DNA from: Obrimoposthia wandeli
Taxonomy: Eukaryota
Direction: 5' to 3'
NCBI GenBank assembly: GCA_977020255.1
Contig: CDROCS010000506.1
Span: 3,410,001 to 3,474,000, forward strand
DNA length: 64,000 nucleotides
The translations under genes were made by a program, and so were the position numbers. The notes beneath the pieces were generated by a model, which did not search any database, was not told the DNA's origin, and saw only the letters and a program-made list of their open reading frames with translations. Positions 11,522 to 52,849 of the stretch are shown piece after piece (the stretch's first letter is position 1; the number at the start of each line of letters is the position of its first letter).

Positions 11522-13375
11522 TTAATGCTCATTATCAACAAATTCTTCAGACCAAACATCTTGTATATCAGGCCAGCCCCAGACATTGATCGAGACGCCT
11601 TTGAGTACGCCTTGGAAATACAGCGTCTGTTTGTGATGGATCATAGGTATCATCCAGTGTTCTGTGATCATCGCCGTGCTAATCGATTCCAACTCGGTAA
11701 GGTAACTTGTTAATGGTTGCTGTTGGCGAATGTTGATAAGCTTGGTTTGCAGCCAATCACTGGCTTCAACCGATAAGCTTTGATTAAGGATCGCATTCGA
11801 TAACATCCAATGAAATACCGAAGTCGGTAGGTTGTCGTCCAAATCCAGGCTTATCAATATCAGGTCTTCAGTTAAGTTATTGGCACTGGCTTTTTGTACT
11901 AACTCCTCAAAAGAATAGACGTTCACCTCACACTCAATATCAGCTTGTTTAAGTAACTTAACCATCGCCTGAGCGCATTCTTTTAACGTATGGTGCTCGA
12001 AGATAGCAATGGTCAGTTTACTTGGTAAAGACCGCTCTGCGGTGCCTATCGAAATTACTTTTAACCAGCTAGACAGCAAGTTATATGCAGGTATCGCTTC
12101 AATGGGATTGTCTGATAGCTTTAACTCTGCCATCAATTCATCTGCGGCGAGCAGTTGGCTTAGGTATTTCCGTTGCTGTAGGGAAAGATTGGCTCTGCTG
12201 TTGATCATCGCGAGCAAACAGCCATATTCTATTCTGCTTTTTTGATCGCTTTCAACGGTCGCCTTATTACTTGGTGTTTTTTGCTTAAGGTCATTAGCGG
12301 CATAGTTTGAGCGTATCTGACTGGTTTTCTGCACCACATTAGCTTGTATCTCAGTGGTACAGGGCGCGTTAGTCTGTGGTGATGTCACTTGCCATATCGT
12401 CACTGTATCAGTGAGTGCGCGATGGCTGTAATAGTTGTCGTAAGCCTGCAAGCGTAAATACTGTTGCGTATGCTCTTGTACTCTAAATGCGCCACTGCCA
12501 ACAATTGCTTTAGCGGCATTCGGTTGAGAGTTCGGGTTAACATGTGACTGAGATTGTAACTGGGATTGTAATTTAGATTGCAGTTGGGAGCAGGGCTGAA
12601 TCGAATACTTTACATCTGCAAGCAGGCCAGCAAATCCAGGATCGGACTGGTCTAACTGAAAATCAATGCACAGTGGGTTTATCGCGGTGATATGAATGAC
12701 ATGCGCCAGTTCAGTGTTATAGGTCGCCAGTCGCTTTAGACGATTAAATAATTCAGCTATCTTCTCGGCATTAATGGTACTGCCATCATGAAAAGTCAGC
12801 GCTGGGCGTAAGTAGAATCGCCAGCGCAATTGTTCTGCGTTATAAACCCAATGATGAGCCAGTTGCGGCGTGATAATGCCATCTTTGTCGCACTGTACTA
12901 AGCAACAATACACTTGACGCAGCAGAAAGCGTTCGCTGTTTCTTAACGCGATATGTGGCAACAGGGCAGCGAAAGAACGCCCATAGGTTAACTGAATATG
13001 TAACCGACCTTCACGCTGCACCGCACCCGATGTATTTTGCAGTAAGCGCCCAAATAACACTTGGTCATTGTCTATCAGCGCCAGTGCTTTCTCGTATTTA
13101 CCAATCGCAATCAGCTGCTGTGCCAGCTCTGCTTTTAACTCATTGATGGCATAACGCAGATAGAGCGTTGATCGCTGATTACGTCCCGCCTTTGGTGTCC
13201 ATTCTAACCAACCTAACTCGCGCAACTCGTTTAGCAGGGTGCGGCAGTGCCGGGTACTGGTGAACATGGCTTCTGCGACATCTTGCAAGGTGATGGCTAT
13301 TTCTTGTTTAGCTCCCAGCTTCGTTAGCCGAGCGTAATACAGCATTTTCTTATCATTATTCAAAACAGGCAGCAT
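11522..13375 (-). CDS. SgrR-family transcriptional regulator (N-terminal DNA-binding domain plus solute-binding-protein family 5 domain)
   Basis: TSTRHCRTLL, GWLEWTPKAGRNQRS, RSERFLLRQV-like segment, LAHHW, WRFYLRP and GSGAF. Start placed at ATG 13375 after GAGGTG. Confidence 0.88.
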   Translation of the reverse strand: MLPVLNNDKKMLYYARLTKLGAKQEIAITLQDVAEAMFTSTRHCRTLLNELRELGWLEWTPKAGRNQRSTLYLRYAINELKAELAQQLIAIGKYEKALALIDNDQVLFGRLLQNTSGAVQREGRLHIQLTYGRSFAALLPHIALRNSERFLLRQVYCCLVQCDKDGIITPQLAHHWVYNAEQLRWRFYLRPALTFHDGSTINAEKIAELFNRLKRLATYNTELAHVIHITAINPLCIDFQLDQSDPGFAGLLADVKYSIQPCSQLQSKLQSQLQSQSHVNPNSQPNAAKAIVGSGAFRVQEHTQQYLRLQAYDNYYSHRALTDTVTIWQVTSPQTNAPCTTEIQANVVQKTSQIRSNYAANDLKQKTPSNKATVESDQKSRIEYGCLLAMINSRANLSLQQRKYLSQLLAADELMAELKLSDNPIEAIPAYNLLSSWLKVISIGTAERSLPSKLTIAIFEHHTLKECAQAMVKLLKQADIECEVNVYSFEELVQKASANNLTEDLILISLDLDDNLPTSVFHWMLSNAILNQSLSVEASDWLQTKLINIRQQQPLTSYLTELESISTAMITEHWMIPMIHHKQTLYFQGVLKGVSINVWGWPDIQDVWSEEFVDNEH

Positions 13376-13597
13376 ATTATCACCTCGACTTCCGCGTTTA
13401 GACTGTAAATAGGATTTTAAAGACATTATCAGCAAGGTTACGACTTTAAGCGGAAGTAAACAATATTATTCACTCTCTTTTTCACTTCCTGTTATTGGTG
13501 GATACTTACCTCATCATTTAAGCAAGGCGTAACGCTTAAATCACGTTATAGAACTATGGCGTTATAGAAGCTAGAAACTAGAAACAGGGTATGAGGA

Positions 13598-13780
13598 ATG
13601 AACATGTTCAAGACAATTAAAACCATCTTTCAGGGCACAGCAAACAGCACACTCGCTGAGTATTATCAGGCTCGTCTGCAAACCAGTAAAAGCGCTGTCG
13701 AAATCGAGGCTATCTTTAGCCTGAATTCATTAATGTCATTCAATGAAGCCGAAGAACAGCAAGATGAGGTGTTGAAATGA
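13598..13780 (+). CDS. Hypothetical 60-aa protein divergent from sgrR
   Basis: GAGG RBS; its stop overlaps the next start codon (ATGA). Confidence 0.6.
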   Translation: MNMFKTIKTIFQGTANSTLAEYYQARLQTSKSAVEIEAIFSLNSLMSFNEAEEQQDEVLK

Positions 13781-14166
13781 GAATTGAACATGTGGCGATT
13801 TGGTGCAAAGACCTGGAATCAATGAAACGTTTTTACACACATTTTTTTAATGCCGAAAGTAATGCCAAATATGAAAATAAGCGTAAAGGTTTTCAGTCGT
13901 ATTTCCTAACTCTGCCTGATGGCCCACGCATAGAATTGATGCAAATGGATTCTGTGTTGATATCTGCAGCAGATGTATTTCCACAGTTCACAGGTCTTGC
14001 TCATATTGCATTTGCAGTCGGTTCAGAGGCAAAGGTCGATGCAATGGCCGCAGAATTTGTCGCCCAGGGTTATGAGGTGCTCGATGGCCCACGTCGTACA
14101 GGCGATGGTTATTATGAATGTGTGGTGTTAGATCCAGAGTGGAATCGAATTGAGATTGTGATTTAA
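13777..14166 (+). CDS. VOC/glyoxalase family protein
   Basis: IEHVAIW, IELM, GLAHIAF, PRRTGDGYYE and DPEWNRIE. Confidence 0.88.
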   Translation: MRIEHVAIWCKDLESMKRFYTHFFNAESNAKYENKRKGFQSYFLTLPDGPRIELMQMDSVLISAADVFPQFTGLAHIAFAVGSEAKVDAMAAEFVAQGYEVLDGPRRTGDGYYECVVLDPEWNRIEIVI

Positions 14167-14291
14167 TCATATAGGTAGGATTTACTTGTAGAGTAAAACA
14201 CATCACCAAGCCTACTAGGCTATTAACCTATTAACCGATTAGCTTATAGATTGTTTAGCTAGAGTGATGTGTTGATCCTTAATCGTGCTTA

Positions 14292-17081
14292 TTATTGTGG
14301 TCTGTTAGTCAAACGCATGGTTTTGCTTGGGTCTAGGTAGGCACGAATAAACTGGTTCATGTCTGCTACCGAAATACTGGCAAATATTGCTGGTGCGTCT
14401 TCTGTTGATCCTAACGGATAATTAAACAAATGATCTCGGTGTAACAGCCATTGCTTACTCGCTGGATCATTTAATGAAGATGCCAGATCCAGTGCTATTA
14501 TCTTCTTGTTCTCATCTAGCTGTGCTTGGGTTATACCGTTAGTCAGTAAATCCGCAATGATGTCATCGACAACCTGTTGCGTTGTTTCAATATCTTCAAC
14601 TTTAGTGATTAACTCTATCATCACTTCGGTAAATGCCTGACCTGCTGCTTGGTCGCGAACCATCACGTAAGGAGAGTAGGTTAACGATAACTGCTCTCTG
14701 ACGATCTTAGTTAGCGTTTGTCTAAGCATCGCTTGCATGAGTTCGGCTTGATAAACGGCTTTGATACTTGGGTTCGGATTATCGGTGACAGTGTAAACCA
14801 ATACCTGACCATTATCTTGCGGATAGGTTGTTTCATTAATCCCACTGGCATGAGTTATTAATGATTGTACAGGGTGGTCAAAATTACTCTCTTTACCCTT
14901 TGGCAACGTCGCCACATATTGCAATATAAGAGGCTTTAATTGCGCCGTATCAAAGTCGCCGACAATCGTTAATTTATAACCGTTGACGTTATTAAACAGT
15001 GCTTGATAAAGTGCTTCAATGTCACGCTGTTCTACCTTCGCCAATTCCGGCACTGAAATGTGTGCCTGCTGTGGATTATGCGGGAATAAAATCTCACCTG
15101 TTTTTATCCACGTTGCAGTCGCCGGTAGCGCCAAATTATTTTGTTGGTATTCAATGGTAGCTTGTTTTTCTAACGCAAATTCATGCTCATTAACTTTAGC
15201 ATTGGTGATGCTGCTGTATAACATCGAGAACAGCAGTTCCAAACTTTTGGGTTCATTAACCGAATACATGTTGAAGCCATGACTATTGGTATCAATAATT
15301 GGCATGATATCGATACGTTCTTGTTCGAATCTTTGGCCTATCGTTTGTGCTGATAATCCCTCTAAGCCACTGTTTAAATAACTGCTGATGAGCATGTAAT
15401 TGGCTGCGCGCTGCTGCTTGGTAAATGCATTACTACCACCGGGCGCTGTAAAACTCATCTTAATTTCATTTTTAATACTGTCATCTGGCTGTAATACCAC
15501 ACTCACACCATTGCTTAATTGCCACTGTGTCAGTTGCTGTTTGGCATCAAAGCTTTCACTGAGAATATCACTTTCTGTGGCGCTTTTTTTAGCGACTGGC
15601 AAGGTAAGTGTCTCAATGTTAAGAACGATATTTTTAATTGGTTGAGTAAGGGCATAAGCAAAGAGTTTATCGGCTGCTAACAAATCAGGTTTATCGGCTT
15701 GATATGGCGTCGCAAAGGTCATTTGACGCGGGCTGTCGATAAGTTCATTGGCTAATTGATTAAGCTCTTCGAGGCTAACCGTACTCAATAATAATTGATA
15801 AGCTTGTTGTTCAAGCTCGAAAGTAAATTCAATATCGCCGGTTGACCAAGCAGATATCGTTGCGCCTGCTAATTGCGCCGCGTCTTGATTGATGTAGTGA
15901 TTGCTAAGCTGGGCTTGGTCTGATTTCATCTGTGCTAATTGCAGGTCAAATTCAGCTTGGCTAAAACCGTATTGCTGGATGCGCGCTAGCTCTTGGGCAA
16001 TAAACTCAACCGCTTGTTGGCTTTCATTTTTTTGATGGCTTACTGAAATATTGTTGAGCGCTTTATCACCTAACAAAACATCATAGAAAATACCGACATT
16101 ATTGAAGGAGCCTTCGCGTTGGCTGTTAGCCGCCGTCAAACGATAATTGAACAACATGTTTAGCATATCTAATTTGAAAGCCTGACTGAGATCTTGGCTA
16201 TCGGTAATTGCTAATTTAGGTACTTCGAAGTACAGGTCTGTTTGGGAATAATTAATTATTTTACTGCTGTAATCCCGTGTCTGGGTTTTAAATGTTGGCG
16301 CTGTGAATTCCGGTTGTTTCGTGTCGTTTGTTGATTTATCTATACTGGCAAAAAGCTCTGTGATCAGTTGCGTTGCGCGTTCACTATCGACATCACCCGT
16401 TATCAATAATTTGGCATTGTTCGGGCGATACCAAGCTGTGTAAAACTCGTTAACAGAGGCAACCGTACTGTTTTTAATACTTTCAACTGTGCCGATTGGT
16501 AAGCGGTTTTCGTATTCACTGTCTTTGATATAGTCACGGAACAATGCATAGTTATAAGATTGTTCTTGTTGGGTACTTAGATAGTACTCATTTTCTACCA
16601 CGCCTTTTTCTTTATCCAATTCGCCTTGTTCTAATTCAATATCCGTTAAAATATCGCGGAAATATAACAGCGCATCAGCCAGTAACTGTTTATTGGCTTT
16701 AGGGATCGATAAGGTATAAACCGTTTCATCAAACGAGGTATAAGCATTAATATCATTACCGACAACTAAGCCTGACTTTTCAAATAACTCGTCAATTTTT
16801 AGTTTAGGGTAGTGCTTAGTACCATTAAAGGCCATGTGTTCAAGTAGGTGAGCGTATCCAGACTGTGCCTCGGTTTCACTTAACGATCCTGATTTGATCA
16901 TCAAGCGTAGCTCAATTTTATCAGCGCTTTGTGGCTTAGAGTGAACGGCATAAAAGAAGCCATTATCAAAGGTATCGCTACTGATCGTCGTCAGCGGCTG
17001 ATTTTGATTGGGTGCCGTCGCGCAACTAGAGAGGGCGAGTAGGGCAAAGGTAACTAATAATAATTTTCTACAGAACATCAT
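14292..17081 (-). CDS. M16 family zinc metallopeptidase (PqqL-like), lipoprotein
   Basis: HLLEHMAFNG zinc motif, NAYTSFDETVY, EKGVVENE, RLPIG and FYTAWYRPNN; lipobox LSSC. Confidence 0.9.
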   Translation of the reverse strand: MMFCRKLLLVTFALLALSSCATAPNQNQPLTTISSDTFDNGFFYAVHSKPQSADKIELRLMIKSGSLSETEAQSGYAHLLEHMAFNGTKHYPKLKIDELFEKSGLVVGNDINAYTSFDETVYTLSIPKANKQLLADALLYFRDILTDIELEQGELDKEKGVVENEYYLSTQQEQSYNYALFRDYIKDSEYENRLPIGTVESIKNSTVASVNEFYTAWYRPNNAKLLITGDVDSERATQLITELFASIDKSTNDTKQPEFTAPTFKTQTRDYSSKIINYSQTDLYFEVPKLAITDSQDLSQAFKLDMLNMLFNYRLTAANSQREGSFNNVGIFYDVLLGDKALNNISVSHQKNESQQAVEFIAQELARIQQYGFSQAEFDLQLAQMKSDQAQLSNHYINQDAAQLAGATISAWSTGDIEFTFELEQQAYQLLLSTVSLEELNQLANELIDSPRQMTFATPYQADKPDLLAADKLFAYALTQPIKNIVLNIETLTLPVAKKSATESDILSESFDAKQQLTQWQLSNGVSVVLQPDDSIKNEIKMSFTAPGGSNAFTKQQRAANYMLISSYLNSGLEGLSAQTIGQRFEQERIDIMPIIDTNSHGFNMYSVNEPKSLELLFSMLYSSITNAKVNEHEFALEKQATIEYQQNNLALPATATWIKTGEILFPHNPQQAHISVPELAKVEQRDIEALYQALFNNVNGYKLTIVGDFDTAQLKPLILQYVATLPKGKESNFDHPVQSLITHASGINETTYPQDNGQVLVYTVTDNPNPSIKAVYQAELMQAMLRQTLTKIVREQLSLTYSPYVMVRDQAAGQAFTEVMIELITKVEDIETTQQVVDDIIADLLTNGITQAQLDENKKIIALDLASSLNDPASKQWLLHRDHLFNYPLGSTEDAPAIFASISVADMNQFIRAYLDPSKTMRLTNRPQ

Positions 17082-17271
17082 GGTTAAAATAACTCGTTAA
17101 TAATTTATCGTCATAGGGGCGTGCAGCATCAGGTTATTGCATATGGTACAATAAGCATCTTTATGGTTATTGAATTACCTTATAATAACAATCGGTTAAT
17201 AAGTAGTTAATCGTGTATCAACACAGCCTTAGTGTGACTTATCGTTGATAAATACAATTGCTTACAAATCT

Positions 17272-17292
17272 AAATGATATTTACTTGCATTT
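17272..17292. promoter_or_regulatory. Possible Fur box in the divergent M16/bax intergenic region
   Basis: AAATGATATTTACTTGCATTT is an imperfect inverted repeat resembling AATGATAATnATTATCATT. Confidence 0.35.
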
Positions 17293-17353
17293 GGGTTTTG
17301 TTGTGATGTTATTAAGCCTTAAATACTGCACACTTAAAACAGGAATTTAATGA

Positions 17354-18265
17354 ATGTTTTTATCGAAAAGTTTTAAAACAACAACAGCCTCGTTAATGTT
17401 GCTCGTATCATTGAACGTTATGGCTAGTGACAACAATCTGCCTATTTCACCAGAACAAATCAGCCAGCCTTACCCTAATGTCAAAGTCACCACTCTCGAC
17501 TCTGCCACAGCACTTATCCATGAGTTTACACAACAAAAATACCAATTAAAGCGCATGGCTGATAGTGGTGAAATGCCAACCTTGTTTGTAGAAAACCTGC
17601 CAACAGATTTGAATACATTACCGGTAGCGCAAAAGACGTCAGGCTTCATCCGTTTATTACTCCCGACGATTAAAACAGTCAATAAGCGGATCATGGATGT
17701 TAGAACTAAAGTGATTGCCTTATCTGCTCAGCCTAAATCACAGTGGACAAAAGCAGAGCAGGTGTGGATGGATAATCTAATGACTTCTTACTTTGTTAAA
17801 TCACAGCGTATTGATGATTTACTGTTGCGTGTGAATGTCATCCCTGTCGGAATGGTACTTGCGCAAGGCATTGATGAAAGTGGCTGGGGGACAAGTCACT
17901 TCGCTGTGAATGGTAATAGCTTGTTTGGAGAACACCTCTCATCGAAAGGCGGGAAGTATTTAACTACACCAGGGGGACATGTAAAAGTAGCTGCATTTGA
18001 TAACCTTTTCGAAGGTACAGCACATTACATGTATAACTTGAATACGACATCAGCCTATAAAGAACTGTGGGTTTTACGTCAAAAACTGGTGGAAGAAAAT
18101 AAACTATCAGGTCATGAATTAGTCCAGTCACTTTCTCATTATTCAACTCGTGGGCAAGCGTATGTCGATAACTTACGTGCTCTTATCCAATATCATCAGT
18201 TAGATAGCTTCGATAGTGTGGAGTTTAATAACACGCCTCCTATGCGTATCAAGCTAGCAAGGTAA
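17354..18265 (+). CDS. Bax-like glucosaminidase (GH73-like) domain protein, secreted
   Basis: Signal peptide; LAQGIDESGWGTSHFA, NSLFG, YMYNLNT and YSTRGQAY. Confidence 0.8.
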   Translation: MFLSKSFKTTTASLMLLVSLNVMASDNNLPISPEQISQPYPNVKVTTLDSATALIHEFTQQKYQLKRMADSGEMPTLFVENLPTDLNTLPVAQKTSGFIRLLLPTIKTVNKRIMDVRTKVIALSAQPKSQWTKAEQVWMDNLMTSYFVKSQRIDDLLLRVNVIPVGMVLAQGIDESGWGTSHFAVNGNSLFGEHLSSKGGKYLTTPGGHVKVAAFDNLFEGTAHYMYNLNTTSAYKELWVLRQKLVEENKLSGHELVQSLSHYSTRGQAYVDNLRALIQYHQLDSFDSVEFNNTPPMRIKLAR

Positions 18266-18295
18266 CAAAGTAGCAAAGGAAGAAGAAACTCCTTA

Positions 18296-19420
18296 TTGAT
18301 TTTAGTTGCTCATACAACAAAAAAGAGTATGCTGTGCATATGTTTTGTTGTATGGGTAACAATTTTGAAAGATTCAATTTATAAATTTATAATATATGCC
18401 GTGTGTTTAATCACTGTCGGCTTCTCCATTTTTTTGATTACGACAGATAATCTATCTCCTTTTACTACCCAAGCGACGATACACAAAACAATCGCTAATA
18501 TTGCACCTGAAGTCTCGGGTGTTATCACCGAGGTTAATATAAAGAATGGGCAGGATGTTAAAGCCGGTGATAAATTATTTAGTATAAACAGCCTGAATTA
18601 CCAACTGGATGTGCAGTTAGCTGAAGCAGAACTGCATAGCGCCCAAGAATTAGATTTGGCTAAATGGCAAGAGCTAAAATCGGCAAGTCAAAGTCTTATC
18701 CAACGTAACCTCGAGTGGGATAATGCCCAAGCTAAGTACGCTCGTAACCAGCGATTACTGGATAAAGGCCTGCTTAATGAACAAGATTTTGATGAGAGTA
18801 AAATGAATGCCAGCGTTGCCGAAAGTGCAGTGGAAGCTGCTAATGCTGAAGTTTTACGCATCAAAGCGGAGCTTTCTAATCAAAATAAGAATAAAAGTTC
18901 CGCTATTGAGATGGCTGAAACAACATTAGCAAAAGCAAAACTTGATCTTGTTCGTACCAATGTCACCGCTCAATTTTCAGGTACCATCAGTAATTTGCAA
19001 TTACAGTCTGGCAGTTATGTGAATAAAGGCAGCGTGTCATTATTTATGGTTAACGAAGAAAGTACCTGGTTAAGTGCAGATTTTAATGAAAAAGGTATAG
19101 TGCATTTACAGGCTGGTTCTACTGTGTTGATCGCATTTGATGCAATGCCGGGACAGGTCTTTTCTGGAGTGATCACCAATCAAGATCGTGCTATTTTTGA
19201 TTCATCCACTTCAACAAGTCAACTATCTACTGTTACGAACGATTCTCGCTGGATCCGTGAACAGCAAAAGATTCGAACTCGAATTCATATCAACGATGTT
19301 AATACGGCGCTAATTGCAGGATCTCGGGCGAGTGTCATTGTCAGTAACGGTAATGCAGTTATCGACACTATTGGTTATGCATGGATAAAGCTGGTGTCTT
19401 GGTTTAGATATATCTACTAA
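18296..19420 (+). CDS. HlyD-family membrane fusion protein (true start probably TTG near 18365)
   Basis: IAPEVSGVITEV, GQDVKAGDKLF, coiled coil and A-QFSGTISNL lipoyl-like halves. Confidence 0.85.
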   Translation: MILVAHTTKKSMLCICFVVWVTILKDSIYKFIIYAVCLITVGFSIFLITTDNLSPFTTQATIHKTIANIAPEVSGVITEVNIKNGQDVKAGDKLFSINSLNYQLDVQLAEAELHSAQELDLAKWQELKSASQSLIQRNLEWDNAQAKYARNQRLLDKGLLNEQDFDESKMNASVAESAVEAANAEVLRIKAELSNQNKNKSSAIEMAETTLAKAKLDLVRTNVTAQFSGTISNLQLQSGSYVNKGSVSLFMVNEESTWLSADFNEKGIVHLQAGSTVLIAFDAMPGQVFSGVITNQDRAIFDSSTSTSQLSTVTNDSRWIREQQKIRTRIHINDVNTALIAGSRASVIVSNGNAVIDTIGYAWIKLVSWFRYIY

Positions 19421-20458
19421 ATGCTCGGAGGTGACGATATGTTGATTAAAAATTCAGATGTTAACGCAACCTTGAGAGTGACCTTTACAATTACGCTATG
19501 CATGTTGATGGGTAAGTTACTCGATCTTGAGTCACCGATATATTTAGCGCTGTATCCAACGCTTCTAATGACTAAAGGCAAAGATTTCTCGTGGCAAGGA
19601 GTAGGTAAAACATTTTTCCCTACATTTTGGGCTGCAGTCTGCGCATTGGTCGTTGCGGAAGTTTTTTATGATCATCCCTTTGTCATCTGGACTATCAGTT
19701 TAGTTTTTTTTGATATCATGCGCCGCCGTGCTAATACGCCAATTAAGTTAGGTGGGATGTTAATGCCGACATTTAACTGGATATTAATTGTGGTGTTTTC
19801 CCAACAAGGCAGTTTAGATATGACGATGCGTATTCATGAGATCTTGCTCTCGATGATGATTACAGCGGTCGTTGCCAAAACAATGGTGAGTCTATTTCCT
19901 GTAGATAAAGTGGCTAAGCCGCCTCAATTCAAACCACAAATTGTGACTTACCAACATCGTTTTGTGTCGGGGTGTCTCATCGGTGGTGGGCTGGGATTTC
20001 TGATGATTGTTGACTTACTTTCTGCCACTTTTTGTATGGTGCCAGTGATTGCGGCTTCAATCCAATTTACGCGAGATAAGTTTAAATCTGTTGTCTTACA
20101 GCGTTTTATAAGTCAAATAGGTGGTTGTGCGGTTGCGGCTATCTTTACCATCATGATGGCTGGGCATCAAAACACGATTATTTTTTATGCGTTAGGTTTA
20201 GGTACTTTAGTGTTTATCATTACTAAATGGATGGTGACGTCGGAAGGTCCTTCTCGTGATCTTCATGGTGATGTATTATTAGCGACGATGTTGCCTATTC
20301 AGTTGTATATCGGTAATACAACATTTGGGTTAGAGAATACATATCTACGCGCATGGGAGCTTACCGTGACCTTGAGCATCCTCTTCATTTTTCATTACTT
20401 AACACGTTCTCGAGATAATCATGATCAAAGAAATCACAAACATTCCAGAGTTGGATGA
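19421..20458 (+). CDS. DUF2955-like integral membrane protein (FUSC-related)
   Basis: Multiple hydrophobic helices; lies between HlyD and MarR, an arrangement recalled from Vibrionales. Confidence 0.65.
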   Translation: MLGGDDMLIKNSDVNATLRVTFTITLCMLMGKLLDLESPIYLALYPTLLMTKGKDFSWQGVGKTFFPTFWAAVCALVVAEVFYDHPFVIWTISLVFFDIMRRRANTPIKLGGMLMPTFNWILIVVFSQQGSLDMTMRIHEILLSMMITAVVAKTMVSLFPVDKVAKPPQFKPQIVTYQHRFVSGCLIGGGLGFLMIVDLLSATFCMVPVIAASIQFTRDKFKSVVLQRFISQIGGCAVAAIFTIMMAGHQNTIIFYALGLGTLVFIITKWMVTSEGPSRDLHGDVLLATMLPIQLYIGNTTFGLENTYLRAWELTVTLSILFIFHYLTRSRDNHDQRNHKHSRVG

Positions 20459-32717: not shown

Positions 32718-32793
32718 AAAAAGGCGAGCATGATATGGAATATTTATAAGTAAAAAAATCCACACATGCTCGCCTTTATTAGCTTAAATCGCA
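32718..32793. repeat. Hairpin repeat, copy 1 of 3
   Basis: AAAGGCGAGCAT...ATGCTCGCCTTT-ATTAGCTTAAAT; about 71 of 80 aligned positions match copy 2 by hand alignment. Confidence 0.85.
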
Positions 32794-46540: not shown

Positions 46541-46592
46541 TAATCGAGTCACAGGGCGCGATGCGTAATATTATCCTCGGCAACTTGATAAC

Positions 46593-46634
46593 TTTACGCT
46601 CAGATTCAAAAAGTTTACGCTCAGATGCAAAAAG
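46593..46634. repeat. Two tandem 21-bp units TTTACGCTCAGAT(T/G)CAAAAAG
   Basis: 46593-46613 and 46614-46634 differ at one base. Confidence 0.9.
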
Positions 46635-46720
46635 GCGAGCATGATAATGGATCATTTATAATTAAATAAATCCACATCAATGCTCGCCTTTGTTAGCTTA
46701 AATACGCAGTTCTAGACCTG
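46629..46720. repeat. Hairpin repeat copy 2 plus a truncated copy of the guaC terminator
   Basis: 46683-46720 is identical over 38 bp to 51756-51793. Confidence 0.9.
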
Positions 46721-46830
46721 TGTCAAAACAACCATTCCTTGAAATATCCCCTCTATATAGTTCAATAACTTAAAAGAAAACAATCATACGTTGAAATAAC
46801 AAAAAACAAGCATAGGTTGATATATTTGTG
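46721..46830 (+). mobile_element. Tn7-family (Tn6677-like) transposon left end
   Basis: Terminal TGTCAAAA, then three CAA(C/T/G)CAT-NNN-TTGA(A/T)AT sites at 46729, 46781 and 46807. An IHF-like GTTCAATAACTTA (46760-46772) lies between sites 1 and 2. The end begins exactly where identity to the guaC-downstream sequence stops. Confidence 0.8.
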
Positions 46831-46887
46831 TAATCACAGTAACTACTATTTTTAAGCTGTAAGAAAGTTTCTTACCAAAATGTACAA

Positions 46888-47223
46888 CTAATCCATATAA
46901 GTTACAGCTAGCCTGTTGTCTACTAGATGTTTTGCTACCTCGTAGTCTGGATTATATGTGGCAACATTATGCGCAGCCATCCCAATAGCCGAGGCTAGGC
47001 CTAAAACACCTGTTATACCACCAAATAAGCTTCCGCCAGCAGCTGCAACTCTGCCATATGTATAAATACGGCACGAAAGCCCGTTGGTTTCGATTATATT
47101 TTCAATTTTAGATATGGCGCTTCCCATTCTTCCACTGAGTCCAATTATTTCAAATGATTTATGATCTTCTATTAAAGACTTCACTTTATTAGAATCGAGA
47201 TCTTCATATTTTACAGATTCCAT
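46888..47223 (-). CDS. Hypothetical protein with a Gly/Ala hydrophobic segment (island cargo)
   Basis: 111 aa; RVAAAGGSLFGGITGVLGLASAIGMAAHNVATYNPDYEV. Confidence 0.75.
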   Translation of the reverse strand: MESVKYEDLDSNKVKSLIEDHKSFEIIGLSGRMGSAISKIENIIETNGLSCRIYTYGRVAAAGGSLFGGITGVLGLASAIGMAAHNVATYNPDYEVAKHLVDNRLAVTYMD

Positions 47224-47422
47224 TGTTTTTCCTTTTTAAATATTTCGATAATGTCATAAATTTAGTCGTATTTATTTGTATATATATATGTAGCTTTATA
47301 CATGTATAAATACATTAGTTTAAAACTTGTTTAATGTCTACAATATGCAGTCGATTAATGGTAATTAACTGATTTGATTGTTATTATCTTCTATATTATT
47401 TGAATTAACCAGTGGAAATGTA

Positions 47423-48262
47423 ATGTTAAAAAATGACTTGCGTAAATCAGCCTTAGCGAAACTAGAATCAACTGAGAAATCATATAAATCTCAAGCGAAA
47501 TTAATAGAAAAAAACTCTATTAAACTTTTTGAAGTTAGACAACAAAGCAGTGTAGATACACTTGTTGCAATCGAAAATTATATTAATACACTTGCAAACT
47601 CGCCAAAAGAATTTGATAAAGCATTTAATGTATTTAAGGCAGACATAAAAGAGTTCAATAATAAAATTAAAACTCTCAATGAAGAATATGAAAAATCAAA
47701 CATAGGTAAAAGTGGAATCGGTGGTGCGATGGCTGGAGCTGGTGTTGCTATGTTTGCGCCTACTGCGGCAATGGCCGTAGCTACTACATTTGGCGCAGCA
47801 TCTACTGGTACTGCTATATCAGCTTTAGGTGGCGCAGCTGCAACAAATGCTGCGTTAGCATGGCTAGGCGGTGGTGCTCTTGCTGCTGGAGGTGGTGGTA
47901 TGGCTGCTGGTAATACTCTTTTAGCATTAGCTGGTCCTATCGGTTGGGGAATCGGAGCTGTTAGCTTAGCTGGCGCAGGTTTATTTACGCGTAGTAAAAA
48001 TCAAGACATTGCAGATAAAGCCGAAAAAGAAATTAAAAAAATTAGAATTGAAACATCTAAGCTAAAAACGATGAATATTAAAGTGTCGGCTTGTTCTAAA
48101 TTAACAGAGAAGCATTCGTTAGGGTGTTTAGAACTTTGTTGCTTATTGAGAGCTAATGCTCCTAGCGATTACTTGAAGTTTGATGCTGAGCAGAAAGGGA
48201 AACTCGGAGCTCTAATTAACCACATCAACGGATTGTCTTTAATGATCAAAGAACGTATTTAG
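47423..48262 (+). CDS. Coiled-coil protein with a long Gly/Ala hydrophobic hairpin (island cargo)
   Basis: Helical N- and C-termini flank GAASTGTAISALGGAAATNAALAWLGGGALAAGGGGMAAG. ATG 47423 preferred over TTG 47378. Confidence 0.8.
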   Translation: MLKNDLRKSALAKLESTEKSYKSQAKLIEKNSIKLFEVRQQSSVDTLVAIENYINTLANSPKEFDKAFNVFKADIKEFNNKIKTLNEEYEKSNIGKSGIGGAMAGAGVAMFAPTAAMAVATTFGAASTGTAISALGGAAATNAALAWLGGGALAAGGGGMAAGNTLLALAGPIGWGIGAVSLAGAGLFTRSKNQDIADKAEKEIKKIRIETSKLKTMNIKVSACSKLTEKHSLGCLELCCLLRANAPSDYLKFDAEQKGKLGALINHINGLSLMIKERI

Positions 48263-49720
48263 ATGTCAGTACTTAAAGATAAAGTTTCAGTTCAAGATCA
48301 GCTTTTAGCATCATTGTCCCATCAAATGGAAGTCGCTCGTCAACAAGCGATGAACATGGCTATCGAGCACCAAGATAAAGCCCTTTTATTCGCGATTAAG
48401 CAAATTGATGAAGTTAAAGAGCAGCTAAAAGATCCATCCAACTTTTTGGGGCGAATGGATACTAAGCATGGTGAAGTAGCTGAAAAAATCGAAGTTGCAA
48501 TTAGAAATGCAAAGGAAGCACTTAATCAGCAAGTTACAGCTGCACCAGACTTTAGCGCTACCTTTGAAGGCGTTGGGAGAATTGCCCCAGAAGACTACAT
48601 CATCGATGGGGTGGAAGTTCAGTCTAAGTTTATCAATGGTTTAAATAATAATCTAAAGCATGTAATGGACCACATGGAAAAGTATGAGCAATTTGGTCGA
48701 GATGGCTCGTATTATCATATTCCTAAAGATAGTCATCAACAGATACAGAAAATATTAGATGGAGAGTCTGTTGATGGCGTTAAGCTAGCAACTATAAATG
48801 CCGTTAAGGAAAAAGTTCAAGCGATAGAAGCTCTTTCTGGTAAATCATTTAATGAAGTCGTACAACCCGGAAACTCAACATATGACGAAGTACAGTTGTA
48901 TAGAGCGGATGGAACTTTAGATCAGCATAGTACTGATTTAAAAATTGAAAATGATGTGAAAGTAGATGATATAAAATCTGATGATGTATACAAAGAAAGC
49001 CTAGGTGAAATGGGCAACGCTGCTTTAGGCGGTGCAGTGGTTGGTGCTGGCGTAAGCTTTGTTAGTAATGTTTATCAGAAGCATAAACAAGGTAAAAACT
49101 TATTCAAAGGTCAATTTTCCAAATCCGATTGGAAAGAGCTCGGCATTGATATGGGAAAAGCTTCTTTAATTGGTGGCTTCTCTGGTGCTGCTCTTTATGG
49201 CTTAACAAATTATGCTGCGATGTCGGCACCATTCGCTGGAGCAGTGGTTACAGCTTCCAAAGGGATTGGCAGCTTATCAATGCAATATAAGAGTGGTGAG
49301 CTTGAACTTGATGAGTTTATTGATCTGAGTTTGCTCGTATGTGGAGAGTCGGCTGCAGTCGGTTTAGCGTCAATGGTTGGACAAACTCTAATACCAATAC
49401 CTGTAGTGGGTGCTTTAGTTGGTTCGATGGCGGCTAAGTTTTGTATAGATCTAATCAAAAGTTCAGATGAAAAGGTTATCAATGAATTTCAAAAGAGAGT
49501 CAGTGAATTCTCGAGTAGCTTAAACGCGCAAGAACTAAAAGTACTTAAAAGCATTGAATCTAAGTTTGAACATTTAACTAGTATCACTGAAGCTGCATTT
49601 AATGTTGAAAACAATACTAAATTACTGGAGCTTAGTGTTGACCTTGCTCGTGAACATCATGTACCAGAAGATAAAATAATTAAAAGTATCTCAAACTTAG
49701 ATGATTTTATGTTGGGGTAA
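48263..49720 (+). CDS. Coiled-coil / putative nuclease-like / membrane-segment protein (island cargo)
   Basis: Abuts the upstream stop. Contains EDYIIDGVEVQSK (PD-(D/E/Q)xK-like) and several Gly-rich hydrophobic helices ending IPIPVVGALVGSMAA. Confidence 0.75.
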   Translation: MSVLKDKVSVQDQLLASLSHQMEVARQQAMNMAIEHQDKALLFAIKQIDEVKEQLKDPSNFLGRMDTKHGEVAEKIEVAIRNAKEALNQQVTAAPDFSATFEGVGRIAPEDYIIDGVEVQSKFINGLNNNLKHVMDHMEKYEQFGRDGSYYHIPKDSHQQIQKILDGESVDGVKLATINAVKEKVQAIEALSGKSFNEVVQPGNSTYDEVQLYRADGTLDQHSTDLKIENDVKVDDIKSDDVYKESLGEMGNAALGGAVVGAGVSFVSNVYQKHKQGKNLFKGQFSKSDWKELGIDMGKASLIGGFSGAALYGLTNYAAMSAPFAGAVVTASKGIGSLSMQYKSGELELDEFIDLSLLVCGESAAVGLASMVGQTLIPIPVVGALVGSMAAKFCIDLIKSSDEKVINEFQKRVSEFSSSLNAQELKVLKSIESKFEHLTSITEAAFNVENNTKLLELSVDLAREHHVPEDKIIKSISNLDDFMLG

Positions 49721-49941
49721 GTTATTTTTTAATTTAAATAGGGGAGGGCGATTAATTTAAGACGTGTATTTTCTCCATCAAACGTACCCATAAATATTTA
49801 TTTAACGTATTTTGTGGTGATTTATTCAATAAAGCACTTTTCAAACAATTGGTCCTTCTGCTGGTTTAATACGTCCGCCTGCATTGGTTTATTTCTTCGC
49901 TGGGCGTGATGCTATCCTATTAATGATAATGAGATAAATGA

Positions 49942-51663
49942 ATGAAAGTTATTAACCCTATAGAACTAGATATTTTAACCGATGGCGAGCGCTATACATT
50001 AGATACAAAACTTAAGAAATTGTTAGCTAATGATGATTGCTTTATCTATGTTCAACCAATAATAAATAACATGAAGCCAGACTTTATTGTTATTGGTAAA
50101 GAGTTTGGAGTTTTAACTATAGAGGTTAAAGATTGGAGTGATGATTATGTTTTATCTGCAAATCCACAAGTTGTTACCTGTGTAGATAAAAAGTATAAAA
50201 ATCCAATTTCACAAGTTAGCACTTATTCGAGTATCATCCGTAGTAAATTAAATGGAGTTTTTGATTTTATTGATGAGCAGGGGGATTTAACGGTTCCTGT
50301 AAAATCTGTAGTCTTTTATGTTAACTTAACAAGTGATGCGGTAACTAAGCATTCGCATCTAGTAAGCAATGATGTTGCGGTTTATAATAAAAGAGATTTA
50401 CGTCATCTATCTTTAACTGATTTTATTACGCCGAGCGATGTTTATTTATCGGATAAAGAACTCTTGGCTGTTCGTGGTGTTTTATTTCCCGAAATTGTAA
50501 TCCCAAGTGATAATCCTATTTCTAATGATGAATTTTTAGAAGTCGTAGATATTCGAGCGTTAGACTACGAGCAAGAAGAATTTTCTAAAAAAGTTCCTAA
50601 TGGACACTACATGGTTTCGGGAATACCGGGTAGTGGGAAAACGGTTATATTACTATCTAGAGCCCTGCATCTAGCACAACATCACAATGATTATAAAATT
50701 ATCATTCTTACTTATACAAAAGCGTTGTCTAATAAATTAAAGCATCAATTAGCTCTTAAGGCTAAAGAAATGCAAATTGATAATAAGGCTTTAGATAGAA
50801 TTGAAATTAAAAACTTTCATAAGTTATGTTATGACCTTGTAGGCAGTCCTGCCTATAGTAAGGGAAAGAAAGATGACGTTTATTTTAATCAATTTTGGCC
50901 AAGAGAAGCTATCCTCGCTGTTAAAAATAACCCTAAATATGATGCCGTGCTTGTGGATGAATACCAAGATTTTCATGCAGACTGGTTTGAGCTTTGTCGT
51001 GAAATTTGCAAAAAGAATTCGAATGGCGAAGAACATTTATTTTTTGCGGGTGACAGATTACAAAGAATTTATGATGTGACTTGGAACAGCTATAAAGAAA
51101 TAGGAATTAATATTCAAGGTCGAAGTAAGTTACTGAAAACACCTTATCGAACAAATCAAAATCATTTAGATTTTTCATTAAAGTTCCTTTCATTAAATGA
51201 GGGGTTAGCGAAAGATATAGGTAATTTTTATGAAATCGAAAAGTTAAATAATTTTTCTGTTTCTAGGGATAACATAGACCTATTAGCTGGTAATACCTCA
51301 TCACTATTAAAATATATTGAGGAATTAGTTATGAGTCTTGATATTGCTCCTGAAGATATATTGATTCTATGTCATAAAAATTACGAGTGTTCTCAAATAC
51401 TAAAAATGATGCCAGAGAATATAAGTTGTAATTTTGTATCTGGTAAAGAACCTATGAAAGGAAAAGGACTGATTACAACGTATCACTCATCTAAAGGACT
51501 CGAAGCTAAATATTGCATTTTGTTCAAAGTAGAAAATTTTGAAGTGGACAAACAAAATAGAACTTTAATGTATGTTGGTATGACTAGAGCATCTGAAAAA
51601 TTAATTATTAACTATGAGTATAATAAAAATTTCGCTGAAGATATTACGGATATGTTGTCATAA
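49942..51663 (+). CDS. NERD nuclease fused to a superfamily 1 (UvrD-like) helicase
   Basis: PDFIV...IEVKDW, Walker A GIPGSGKT, Walker B VDEYQD, GDRLQRIY, YRT, TYHSSKGLE and YVGMTRA. Confidence 0.85.
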   Translation: MKVINPIELDILTDGERYTLDTKLKKLLANDDCFIYVQPIINNMKPDFIVIGKEFGVLTIEVKDWSDDYVLSANPQVVTCVDKKYKNPISQVSTYSSIIRSKLNGVFDFIDEQGDLTVPVKSVVFYVNLTSDAVTKHSHLVSNDVAVYNKRDLRHLSLTDFITPSDVYLSDKELLAVRGVLFPEIVIPSDNPISNDEFLEVVDIRALDYEQEEFSKKVPNGHYMVSGIPGSGKTVILLSRALHLAQHHNDYKIIILTYTKALSNKLKHQLALKAKEMQIDNKALDRIEIKNFHKLCYDLVGSPAYSKGKKDDVYFNQFWPREAILAVKNNPKYDAVLVDEYQDFHADWFELCREICKKNSNGEEHLFFAGDRLQRIYDVTWNSYKEIGINIQGRSKLLKTPYRTNQNHLDFSLKFLSLNEGLAKDIGNFYEIEKLNNFSVSRDNIDLLAGNTSSLLKYIEELVMSLDIAPEDILILCHKNYECSQILKMMPENISCNFVSGKEPMKGKGLITTYHSSKGLEAKYCILFKVENFEVDKQNRTLMYVGMTRASEKLIINYEYNKNFAEDITDMLS

Positions 51664-51729
51664 TAATTGAGATTAGAAATAATGATTTAAATATCATTAA
51701 TTATTTTTAGGGGTAACCTAAAAGACAAT

Positions 51730-51793
51730 AAAGGCGAGGCAATAATTAAATTGTTCTCGCCTTTGTTAGCTTAAATACGCAGTTCTAGACCTG
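51730..51793. repeat. Hairpin repeat copy 3 (short-loop variant)
   Basis: AAAGGCGAG...CTCGCCTTT-GTTAGCTTAAATACGCAGTTCTAGACCTG. Confidence 0.85.
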
Positions 51794-51800
51794 CGTATTT
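51773..51800 (-). terminator. guaC intrinsic terminator
   Basis: AAATACGCAG-N8-CTGCGTATTT, a perfect 10-bp stem 8 nt after the stop. Confidence 0.8.
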
Positions 51801-51808
51801 ACACCAAT

Positions 51809-52849
51809 TTATTCTTTACCGAATACGTTGTTTTCTTGCTCAAGTACACGGATAAAGGTAGTACGCTTGCTTAGCTCTTTTAATGAAGCTGCGCCAACGT
51901 ATGTACAAGTAGAACGTACGCCACCTAGGATATCAAAAACAGTGTTTTCGATTGGACCACGGTAAGGAACTTCTACAGTTTTGCCTTCTGAAGCACGGTA
52001 TTTAGCAACACCACCTGCGTGTTTGTTCATCGCAGTTGTTGAGCTCATGCCATAGAATTTTTTCGTTTTCTTGCCATTAACTTCGCACAGCTCGCCGCCA
52101 CTTTCGTCGTGACCAGCTAACATACCGCCAAGCATAACGAAGTCTGCGCCGCCGCCAAATGCTTTAGCAACATCACCAGCACAAGAACAACCACCGTCAC
52201 CAACAACCATGCCTGAAAGGCCGTGAGCAGCGTCAGCACACTCGATGATTGCAGAAAGTTGTGGGTAACCAACACCTGTTTTAACACGTGTAGTACATAC
52301 TGAACCAGGACCGATACCAACTTTGATGATATCTGCACCAGAAAGAATAAGTTCTTCTGTGATTTCACCAGTAACTACGTTACCAGCCATAATCGTTTTA
52401 GTTGGGTATGCTTTACGTACTTTACGCACGAAATCAATGAAAAATTCTGAGTAACCATTAGCTACATCGATACAGATAAACTGTAAACGCTCATCTAATG
52501 CTAGAACTTGTTGAAGTTTTTCGAAATCTGAATCTGATGTACCAGTTGATACAAAGATGTGGTCAAAGATTTCTTGGTTTGCTTCTAGGAACTCTTTCCA
52601 TTCAGCTACAGTGTAATGCTTATGTACAGCTGTTAGCATTTTGTGTTCAGCAAGTTCTTTCGCTGCTTCAAATGTGCCTACAGTATCCATGTTTGCAGCA
52701 ATAACCGGTACACCTGTCCAAGTGTACTTGCTGTTAGGGAAAGTGAATGTACGCTCTAAGCTTACTTGTGAACGACTCTTAAGAGTTGAACGTTTTGGGC
52801 GGAAAAGTACATCTTTAAAACCTAGCTTCAATTCTTGTTCTATGCGCAT
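51809..52849 (-). CDS. guaC: GMP reductase
   Basis: [54 protein letters not shown] and RASEGK. Confidence 0.97.

Follow-up and report, generated by a model that had tools for sequence, protein, structure and literature searches.

A putative orphan left end and cargo of a guaC-homing type I-F3a CRISPR-associated transposon beside a re-created attachment site

How does a block of transposon cargo come to lie beside an attachment site that is itself unoccupied? The question is raised by the guaC locus in a 64,000-nucleotide stretch of DNA (henceforth the window; contig CDROCS010000506.1, positions 3,410,001 to 3,474,000, of assembly GCA_977020255.1, listed under Obrimoposthia wandeli), whose own coordinates are used throughout. 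A first-pass annotation, made from the letters alone, had proposed that a relic of a guaC-targeting Tn7-like transposon of the CRISPR-associated transposon (CAST) type lies here, with its left end and cargo retained and its core replaced by recombination. Our analysis argues firmly for an orphan left end and cargo of a guaC-homing type I-F3a CAST beside a re-created attachment site. We read positions 46721-51663 as the remnant of such an element, its core presumably replaced by an unoccupied guaC allele, and give this reading a probability of roughly 0.85. The copy in the window would accordingly be a remnant with the left end and adjoining cargo only, not a functional member of the CAST family.

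Knowing that such an element should begin with a recognisable terminus, we first consider the left edge of the block. It opens with TGT at 46721, directly after the last base (46720) of an exact 38-bp direct repeat whose only two copies in the 64 kb, at 46683-46720 and 51756-51793, bracket 5.0 kb of DNA. The end thus begins exactly where the repeat copy stops, as first annotated, and the equivalent junction at the other copy, 51793/51794, lies 15 bp past the guaC stop codon (51809-51811). The pattern AAAACAANCATNNNTTGAWATA fits only at 46725, 46777 and 46803, and nowhere else in 64 kb even with three mismatches. Because this pattern was derived from the window's own three sites, we used a TnsB weight matrix made from 19 sites, all of them from relatives, with the window sites left out. 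The matrix scored the three sites (L1, L2 and L3) at 30.5, 30.8 and 27.7 bits, and nothing else on the two strands of the window rose above 10.8 bits, which gives independent support to the proposed TGT end with three TnsB-type sites. Their spacing (52 bp from L1 to L2 and 26 bp from L2 to L3) is identical in the left end of Moritella viscosa. Moreover, over 110 bp the window end shares 82-87% identity with each of five related left ends, and over 165 bp it is 84% identical to that of an intact CAST (contig L031).

A CAST left end is described as a TGT terminus followed by three TnsB sites, with a site of the integration host factor (IHF) type between L1 and L2 (PMC10201428). The IHF-like site of the first-pass annotation stands in part: its core (46762-46772) is kept in the five relatives and agrees in position with that description, while the first two consensus positions mismatch, leaving a candidate site. 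The same holds for the proposed target duplication, ACCTG (46716-46720, the last 5 bp of the left repeat), which is homologous to the pentamer ACCTA of M. viscosa and is the equivalent of a target duplication, with only the left junction present in the window. The TGT terminus and the matrix scores point to a genuine Tn7-type left end with three TnsB sites in the same orientation. A scan of genome contigs for a terminal TGT plus site returned six matches, none of them in Moritella and two of them right ends from Vibrio and Psychromonas. On a Vibrio variabilis contig (L008:2630-2770), a three-site left end lies only a few bases from a right end and tnsA, and two Tn7-like elements appear to stand there in tandem.

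What flanks the block on its two sides? The 38-bp repeat covers the right arm of one hairpin (hairpin B) and most of a second (hairpin A) in the terminator module downstream of guaC. We assessed these hairpins by folding, since a simple terminator scan missed both, their loops being beyond its limits. On the guaC side, where the transcript of the gene would end, both hairpins are whole and folding is strong (z = -7), so that the native terminator is intact, as first annotated; the arms of hairpin A lie at 51772-51782 and 51791-51801, and the insertion point falls within the right arm. In the left copy hairpin B folds and hairpin A is broken. The loop of hairpin B measures 39 nt in the left copy versus 17 nt on the guaC side; the two copies are therefore not a fresh duplication, and the guaC-side copy is a different allele of the terminator module. 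A Tn7-type insertion duplicates 5 bp and so does not account for 38 bp; the copy beside guaC, in which hairpin A is intact, is an unoccupied site.

The distribution of the two hairpin B forms and the divergence of guaC bear on the same point. The long-loop form beside a GNAT gene is also present in a conspecific contig (L003), which stops within hairpin B and is uninformative on site occupancy, and in a minor population of metagenomic run X4 the long-loop form is joined straight to guaC; the short-loop form is found elsewhere, for example at the left flank of metagenomic contig L026. Within guaC, the window differs from a conspecific contig at five positions in the last 229 nt and at one in the other ~800 nt, and the 15 bp after the stop codon are strongly diverged between the two, a pattern that would fit recombination with an edge within guaC. 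As the nature of the repeat, an integron attC and a dif-like site were both dropped, because the core motifs do not fit (judged by eye, with no dedicated scan) and because all three module copies of the window are modules that stand downstream of guaC. The third of these is partial: a long-loop hairpin B at 32720-32790, 88% identical to the copy at 46629-46703, is followed by the first 12 nt of the repeat only and then by the stop codon of a minus-strand gene, with no TnsB-type site nearby. This copy may be the trace of an older layer that occupied 32.8-46.6 kb. A 21-bp tandem doublet (46590-46631, 90% identical) stands in the interval from the GNAT gene to the left hairpin B, where L003 differs by short insertions.

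The window lacks the machinery of such an element, as had been noted at the outset. Searching it by tblastn with nine proteins of an intact relative gave nothing better than E = 0.036. Neither a tns or cas homologue nor a type I-F repeat was found in the 64 kb, nor a stand-alone TnsD/TniQ target selector, and the best inverted TnsB-type site that the matrix scan returned in 46721-51800 scores 2.8 bits. Lacking both transposase genes and a right end, the block is immobile as far as transposition goes.

Table 1. Features of the guaC locus in the window, with strand and supporting evidence.
Feature	Position	Strand	Evidence or remarks
Left-flank copy of the guaC terminator module	46633..46720	.	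Hairpin B with long loop (46633-46691) and 38-bp repeat
Predicted transposon left end	46721..46885	+	Terminal TGT 46721-46723; conserved subterminal stretch to ~46885
Predicted TnsB sites of the left end	L1 46725-46746, L2 46777-46798, L3 46803-46824	+	Motif and weight matrix
IHF-like core TCAA-N4-TTA (candidate)	46762-46772		Between L1 and L2; kept in five related left ends
111-aa open reading frame	46888..47223	-	Gly/Ala-rich C-terminal half; no family match
PDC-M09A (PADLOC candidate defence system)	47378..48262	+	PADLOC PDLC04407, E = 3e-110; no Pfam match
PDC-M09B	48263..49720	+	PADLOC PDLC04409, E = 4e-184; no Pfam or NCBIfam match
Fusion of NERD nuclease domain and UvrD-type superfamily 1 (SF1) helicase	49942..51663	+	Pfam NERD and UvrD-helicase; PADLOC C3a187 'NERD+UvrD', E = 5e-59
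Junction stretch, cargo to guaC-side terminator module	51664..51729	.	Comparison with runs X4 and X2
Predicted unoccupied attachment site	51730..51808	.	Hairpin B with short loop 51730-51764, 38-bp repeat 51756-51793, hairpin A
guaC (GMP reductase), intact	51809..52849	-	Pfam IMPDH, E = 1e-78
Predicted protospacer in guaC 3' end	51837..51868	-	Recognised by the homing guide of relatives; position of the protospacer-adjacent motif (PAM) 51869-51870 = GC

Do intact relatives exist that carry the missing parts? This end is found beside tns genes at guaC in conspecific, M. viscosa and metagenomic contigs (L001/L002, L004/L013 and L029), the opposite of the outcome that the first-pass annotation had named as its refutation. 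The two conspecific public contigs (L001/L002) encode a GuaC protein identical to that of the window, with 98.4% identical DNA, and about 20 bp past the guaC stop they carry TGT, three adjacent sites of the same motif and then tnsA, which is a Tn7-type right end. Their TnsA is 99% identical to an M. viscosa protein. Around guaC the window and M. viscosa are ~86% identical, and the window therefore comes from a different Moritella species. The M. viscosa locus (L004/L013) runs in the order guaC, TAGGT, right end, tnsA, tnsB, tnsC, cargo, left end, ACCTA and hairpin-B module, with the 5-bp duplication ACCTA (the reverse complement of TAGGT) at both sides. Since the left junction in the window falls on the base homologous to the M. 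viscosa left junction, 46683-46720 is the native left flank and ACCTG the counterpart of the duplicated pentamer. The left-flank module is orthologous to those of L026 and L029 as well, and the left ends of these two contigs are homologous to that of the window. On metagenomic contig L029, hairpin B and the repeat are followed by the left end and then by 8 kb of cargo together with xre and cas6.

The M. viscosa element (GCA_052921585.1, L013:5931-20400) has both ends and tnsABC, without tniQ, cas genes or an array. Its cargo holds two insertion sequence (IS) copies of the IS3 type, a VspR-family fragment, an AAA_15 and DUF4435 pair resembling the phage anti-restriction-induced system (PARIS), and SAVED and JAB genes. 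The VspR-family fragment (Pfam VspR_N/VspR_C) lies by the IS3 copies, whereas in L018 the gene is intact, beyond the array and xre; the remnant points to secondary loss of the cas module, and the M. viscosa element looks like a CAST stripped of its guide module through IS activity.

The guide module itself is present in other close relatives. L014/L018 (TnsA 88% identical) carry tnsABC, tniQ, Csy2-, Csy3- and Csy4-type genes and three 28-nt I-F repeats, and, set apart from these and next to xre, an atypical spacer that two diverged repeats enclose. Among the close relatives TnsA is 85-88%, TnsB 82% and TnsC 87% identical, and tniQ heads the I-F cas operon. The 26-kb element on L018/L031, with a TTATT duplication on both sides, is a complete type I-F3 CAST. 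Its cargo (L018:3669-6185 and 12047-20122; L031:340-5449) includes a SMODS and SLATT pair resembling a cyclic-oligonucleotide-based antiphage signalling system (CBASS), a VspR-family gene (VspR_N/VspR_C), a 1900-aa protein with matches to Cap4 nuclease and ATPase, and two large unassigned proteins of 835 and 869 aa. About 250 bp inside its left end, just downstream of a cargo gene, a 34-nt piece (L031:281-314) is 91% identical to short-loop hairpin B and the repeat start, a hint that element interiors and the attachment-site module once exchanged DNA. Farther afield, the Moritella matrix gives 22-31 bits to the right end of the guaC-linked V. cholerae element, whose TnsA, TnsB and TnsC are 62, 53 and 68% identical to those of the Moritella CAST.

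A central question for any such element is how it is directed to its target. The atypical spacer of L018 matches the window guaC (51868-51837, minus strand) at 25 of 32 positions; mismatches occur only at positions 3, 6, 12, 18, 21, 24 and 27, all of them codon third positions, and four of the seven fall on every-sixth positions. Across the guaC targets compared, the spacer matches at 25-27 of 32 positions. In the window the junction lies 48 bp beyond the edge of the protospacer; the conspecific contig has 49 bp here, and both M. viscosa and the guaC-linked V. cholerae element have 50. A guaC-matching homing spacer and a similar insertion distance have been reported for I-F3a elements (Petassi et al., bioRxiv 10.1101/2020.07.02.184150). 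With a complete I-F3 relative whose homing spacer matches the window guaC at this distance, the CAST-type label of the first-pass annotation holds. Its remark that there is no CC PAM was also correct, the dinucleotide being GC. PAM stringency is relaxed in I-F3 CAST systems, and the GC is no argument against guide-directed insertion.

Based on these comparisons, we propose the following course of events. In an ancestor of this Moritella strain, an I-F3a element would have homed to guaC. In this family TniQ-Cascade has a dedicated guide that matches the last guaC codons; TnsABC places the insertion 48-50 bp beyond the target, duplicating 5 bp and leaving the right end on the guaC side, and the left junction of the window lies at exactly this distance. 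The right end, tnsABC, tniQ-cas8-cas7-cas6, the array and any further cargo would then have been replaced by DNA with an unoccupied guaC site, most likely through recombination with DNA of an empty-site lineage that crossed over in guaC on one side and was joined within the element on the other. Such a replacement would have re-created an intact landing site by the stranded cargo and given rise to the 38-bp repeat. Replacement of the core by recombination, as first proposed, is plausible, an event that we infer from the differing terminator alleles, the guaC-internal edge and a parallel case on contig L024. In the latter (L024:3210-3324), an older hairpin B is fused to a 62-nt guaC coding fragment (corresponding to window 51871-51932) at a distance of 1.3 kb from the complete gene, with the joint at a common TTAGCT; guaC and terminator DNA have therefore been illegitimately joined at this locus before, by a one-sided joint.

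Several observations weigh against this reconstruction. No trace of the lost part is present in the window, and the breakpoint can be placed somewhere in 51664-51729. The surplus of differences near the 3' end of guaC comes from few sites and could equally reflect an occupied allele imported into the other strain. The matching spacer comes from a relative with 88% identical TnsA and not from the conspecific element, and the PAM in both the window and M. viscosa is GC, not the CC preferred by characterised I-F systems. As for the cargo, the nearest homologue of the NERD helicase on a long contig (67% identical) sits in an ordinary chromosomal context, and the cargo was not found inside an intact CAST, exact-protein look-ups being empty for PDC-M09B, the NERD helicase and the 111-aa open reading frame; part of the cargo could therefore be a later arrival.

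Is the arrangement in the window a single case? Scanning metagenomes with part of the repeat yielded ten Moritella-like contigs, in eight of which the repeat runs into an intact hairpin A and guaC. Empty-site contigs are present in runs X4 and X2. A contig of run X4 is ~92% identical to window 47509-51644 and then continues with hairpin B and the repeat, so that the relic of the window is common to another lineage. L026 runs from guaC through an intact site and hairpin B into unrelated cargo of 8.5 kb that includes a NERD-kinase-helicase, and on to a three-site left end, the repeat and the hairpin B of the other allele; its junction is offset by one base from that of the window, and we regard it as a probable independent case of the same architecture. 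L027 carries an older layer with metabolic cargo, its left end down to two sites, which is split from guaC by an extra block and two more hairpin-B copies; L026 is without this older layer between the same flanks. We found no description of the restored-site layout in the literature, within incomplete coverage.

We offer, tentatively and at somewhat short of even odds, a more general scheme for these layouts. The guaC-homing CASTs of Moritella may act as one-way delivery vehicles, in which an unoccupied site repeatedly takes the place of the machinery and right end while the left end and cargo stay behind. The site would thereby be recycled and an island would build up in layers downstream of guaC, with a copy of the guaC terminator module capping each one; recombination between these copies could later remove layers.

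The alternative that survives best, though we consider it unlikely, is that the block is a cassette recombining at the terminator module, in which a circle of hairpin B, repeat, left end and cargo would enter through one crossover, either by homology or with catalysis in trans, and the transposon end would be a mere passenger left over from some previous event at another place. Direct repeats of the module do flank the block, modules form arrays in L026, L027, L023 and L024, and blocks that lie precisely between modules are found in one of L026 and L027 and missing from the other. Yet the left edge of the block is the CAST insertion point to the base, 48 bp from the protospacer, which a cassette would have to owe to inheritance, and neither Pfam nor PADLOC finds a recombinase domain in any of the four open reading frames of the block. 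The junction offsets in the window, L026 and L029, 1 bp apart, are moreover those expected of separate transposition events. A cassette would thus cover the spread and loss of relics, but not the origin of the first one. Recombination between terminator copies probably does operate on existing relics, next to the CAST origin that we favour for the block.

Could a DNA-binding protein of the TnsD/TniQ type, rather than a guide RNA, have aimed a Tn7-like transposon at guaC? The first-pass annotation had kept this as a fallback, and the tnsABC of the M. viscosa element without tniQ or cas genes, as well as the non-CC PAM of the window, would agree with it. It is not needed, however, since close relatives hold tniQ in an I-F cas operon together with a guaC-matching homing spacer at the right distance, and the VspR fragment beside IS3 in M. 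viscosa points to secondary cas loss; we consider protein-directed targeting very improbable. That the block is a still-mobile mini-element with an unrecognised right end near 51700 is scarcely credible, for although non-autonomous Tn7-like derivatives exist in principle, the left-end sites reach 28-31 bits and its best inverted site 2.8, no ACA terminus adjoins the repeat, and the 38-bp flanking repeat is unlike a Tn7-type 5-bp duplication.

The cargo of this CAST remnant (Table 1) is dominated by candidate defence genes. The PDC-M09A and PDC-M09B genes are adjacent and both profiles are matched, making them a candidate defence pair. Across 47698-49190 the two genes have short glycine-rich repeats in common at the DNA level, which suggests repeated glycine-zipper-like segments in both proteins. 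Homologues of the NERD helicase with 64-76% identity are common in Vibrionaceae, and some of them are single chromosomal genes. The edges of the cargo vary among relatives: in the related relic of run X4 other DNA takes the place of the 111-aa open reading frame region, and 73 unrelated letters stand in place of 51664-51729, a stretch that is present in contigs of run X2 with other DNA to its left.

How does the remnant compare with known systems? Tn6677 was reportedly presented by Klompe et al. in 2019 as a type I-F3a CAST homing to guaC. As in Tn6677 and other I-F3a CASTs, the window junction lies downstream of guaC at 48 bp from a protospacer in the last codons (48-50 bp across relatives), codon third positions fall on tolerated guide positions, the right end would face guaC, and the left end carries TGT, three TnsB sites and an IHF-type site (in the window the IHF-like candidate). 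The Moritella relatives likewise have tnsABC, tniQ-cas8-cas7-cas6, an atypical homing unit and xre. The window end was compared with Tn6677 indirectly, through the TnsB-site motif at the right end of the guaC-linked V. cholerae element. Unlike these systems, the window is without machinery, array and right end, its site is apparently unoccupied again, and the Moritella target has a GC PAM. The M. viscosa element (GCA_052921585.1) has in common with the window the same insertion point, the terminator module, defence cargo and a left end that is 82% identical over 110 bp, but keeps both ends, tnsABC and the 5-bp duplication, while its tniQ-cas genes and array were apparently lost by way of the IS3 copies; it is an earlier stage of decay. 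In Acinetobacter baumannii, an ancestral Tn7-like insertion downstream of nrdB has decayed at its attachment site (PMC11014353). There, too, a decayed element is fixed at the attachment site with its cargo kept, but its ends are hard to recognise and some tns genes are left, whereas the window has a crisp left end, no machinery genes and a rebuilt site. The family and decayed Tn7-like elements at attachment sites are thus already known. What appears to be new is that the guaC-side repeat is another allele of the terminator, and that the layout of unoccupied site, cargo, left end and site copy seems to recur independently.

For annotation, these results mean that the entry for the 5-kb block should name an orphan left end and cargo derived from a CAST, and that for guaC an unoccupied CAST attachment site. 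They would add to the I-F3a family a Moritella branch whose natural ends are complete and which has a homing guide and a natural target with a GC PAM, together with a series of decay that leads from an intact element through a cas-less element and a left end with cargo to an eroded left end. If the recurrence is true, it would offer a testable route by which islands grow at attachment sites. The locus also raises the question whether an orphan left end 5 kb off still gives target immunity. In Moritella, defence genes brought by a guided transposon would become fixed chromosomal genes, and the site would be freed for the next arrival.

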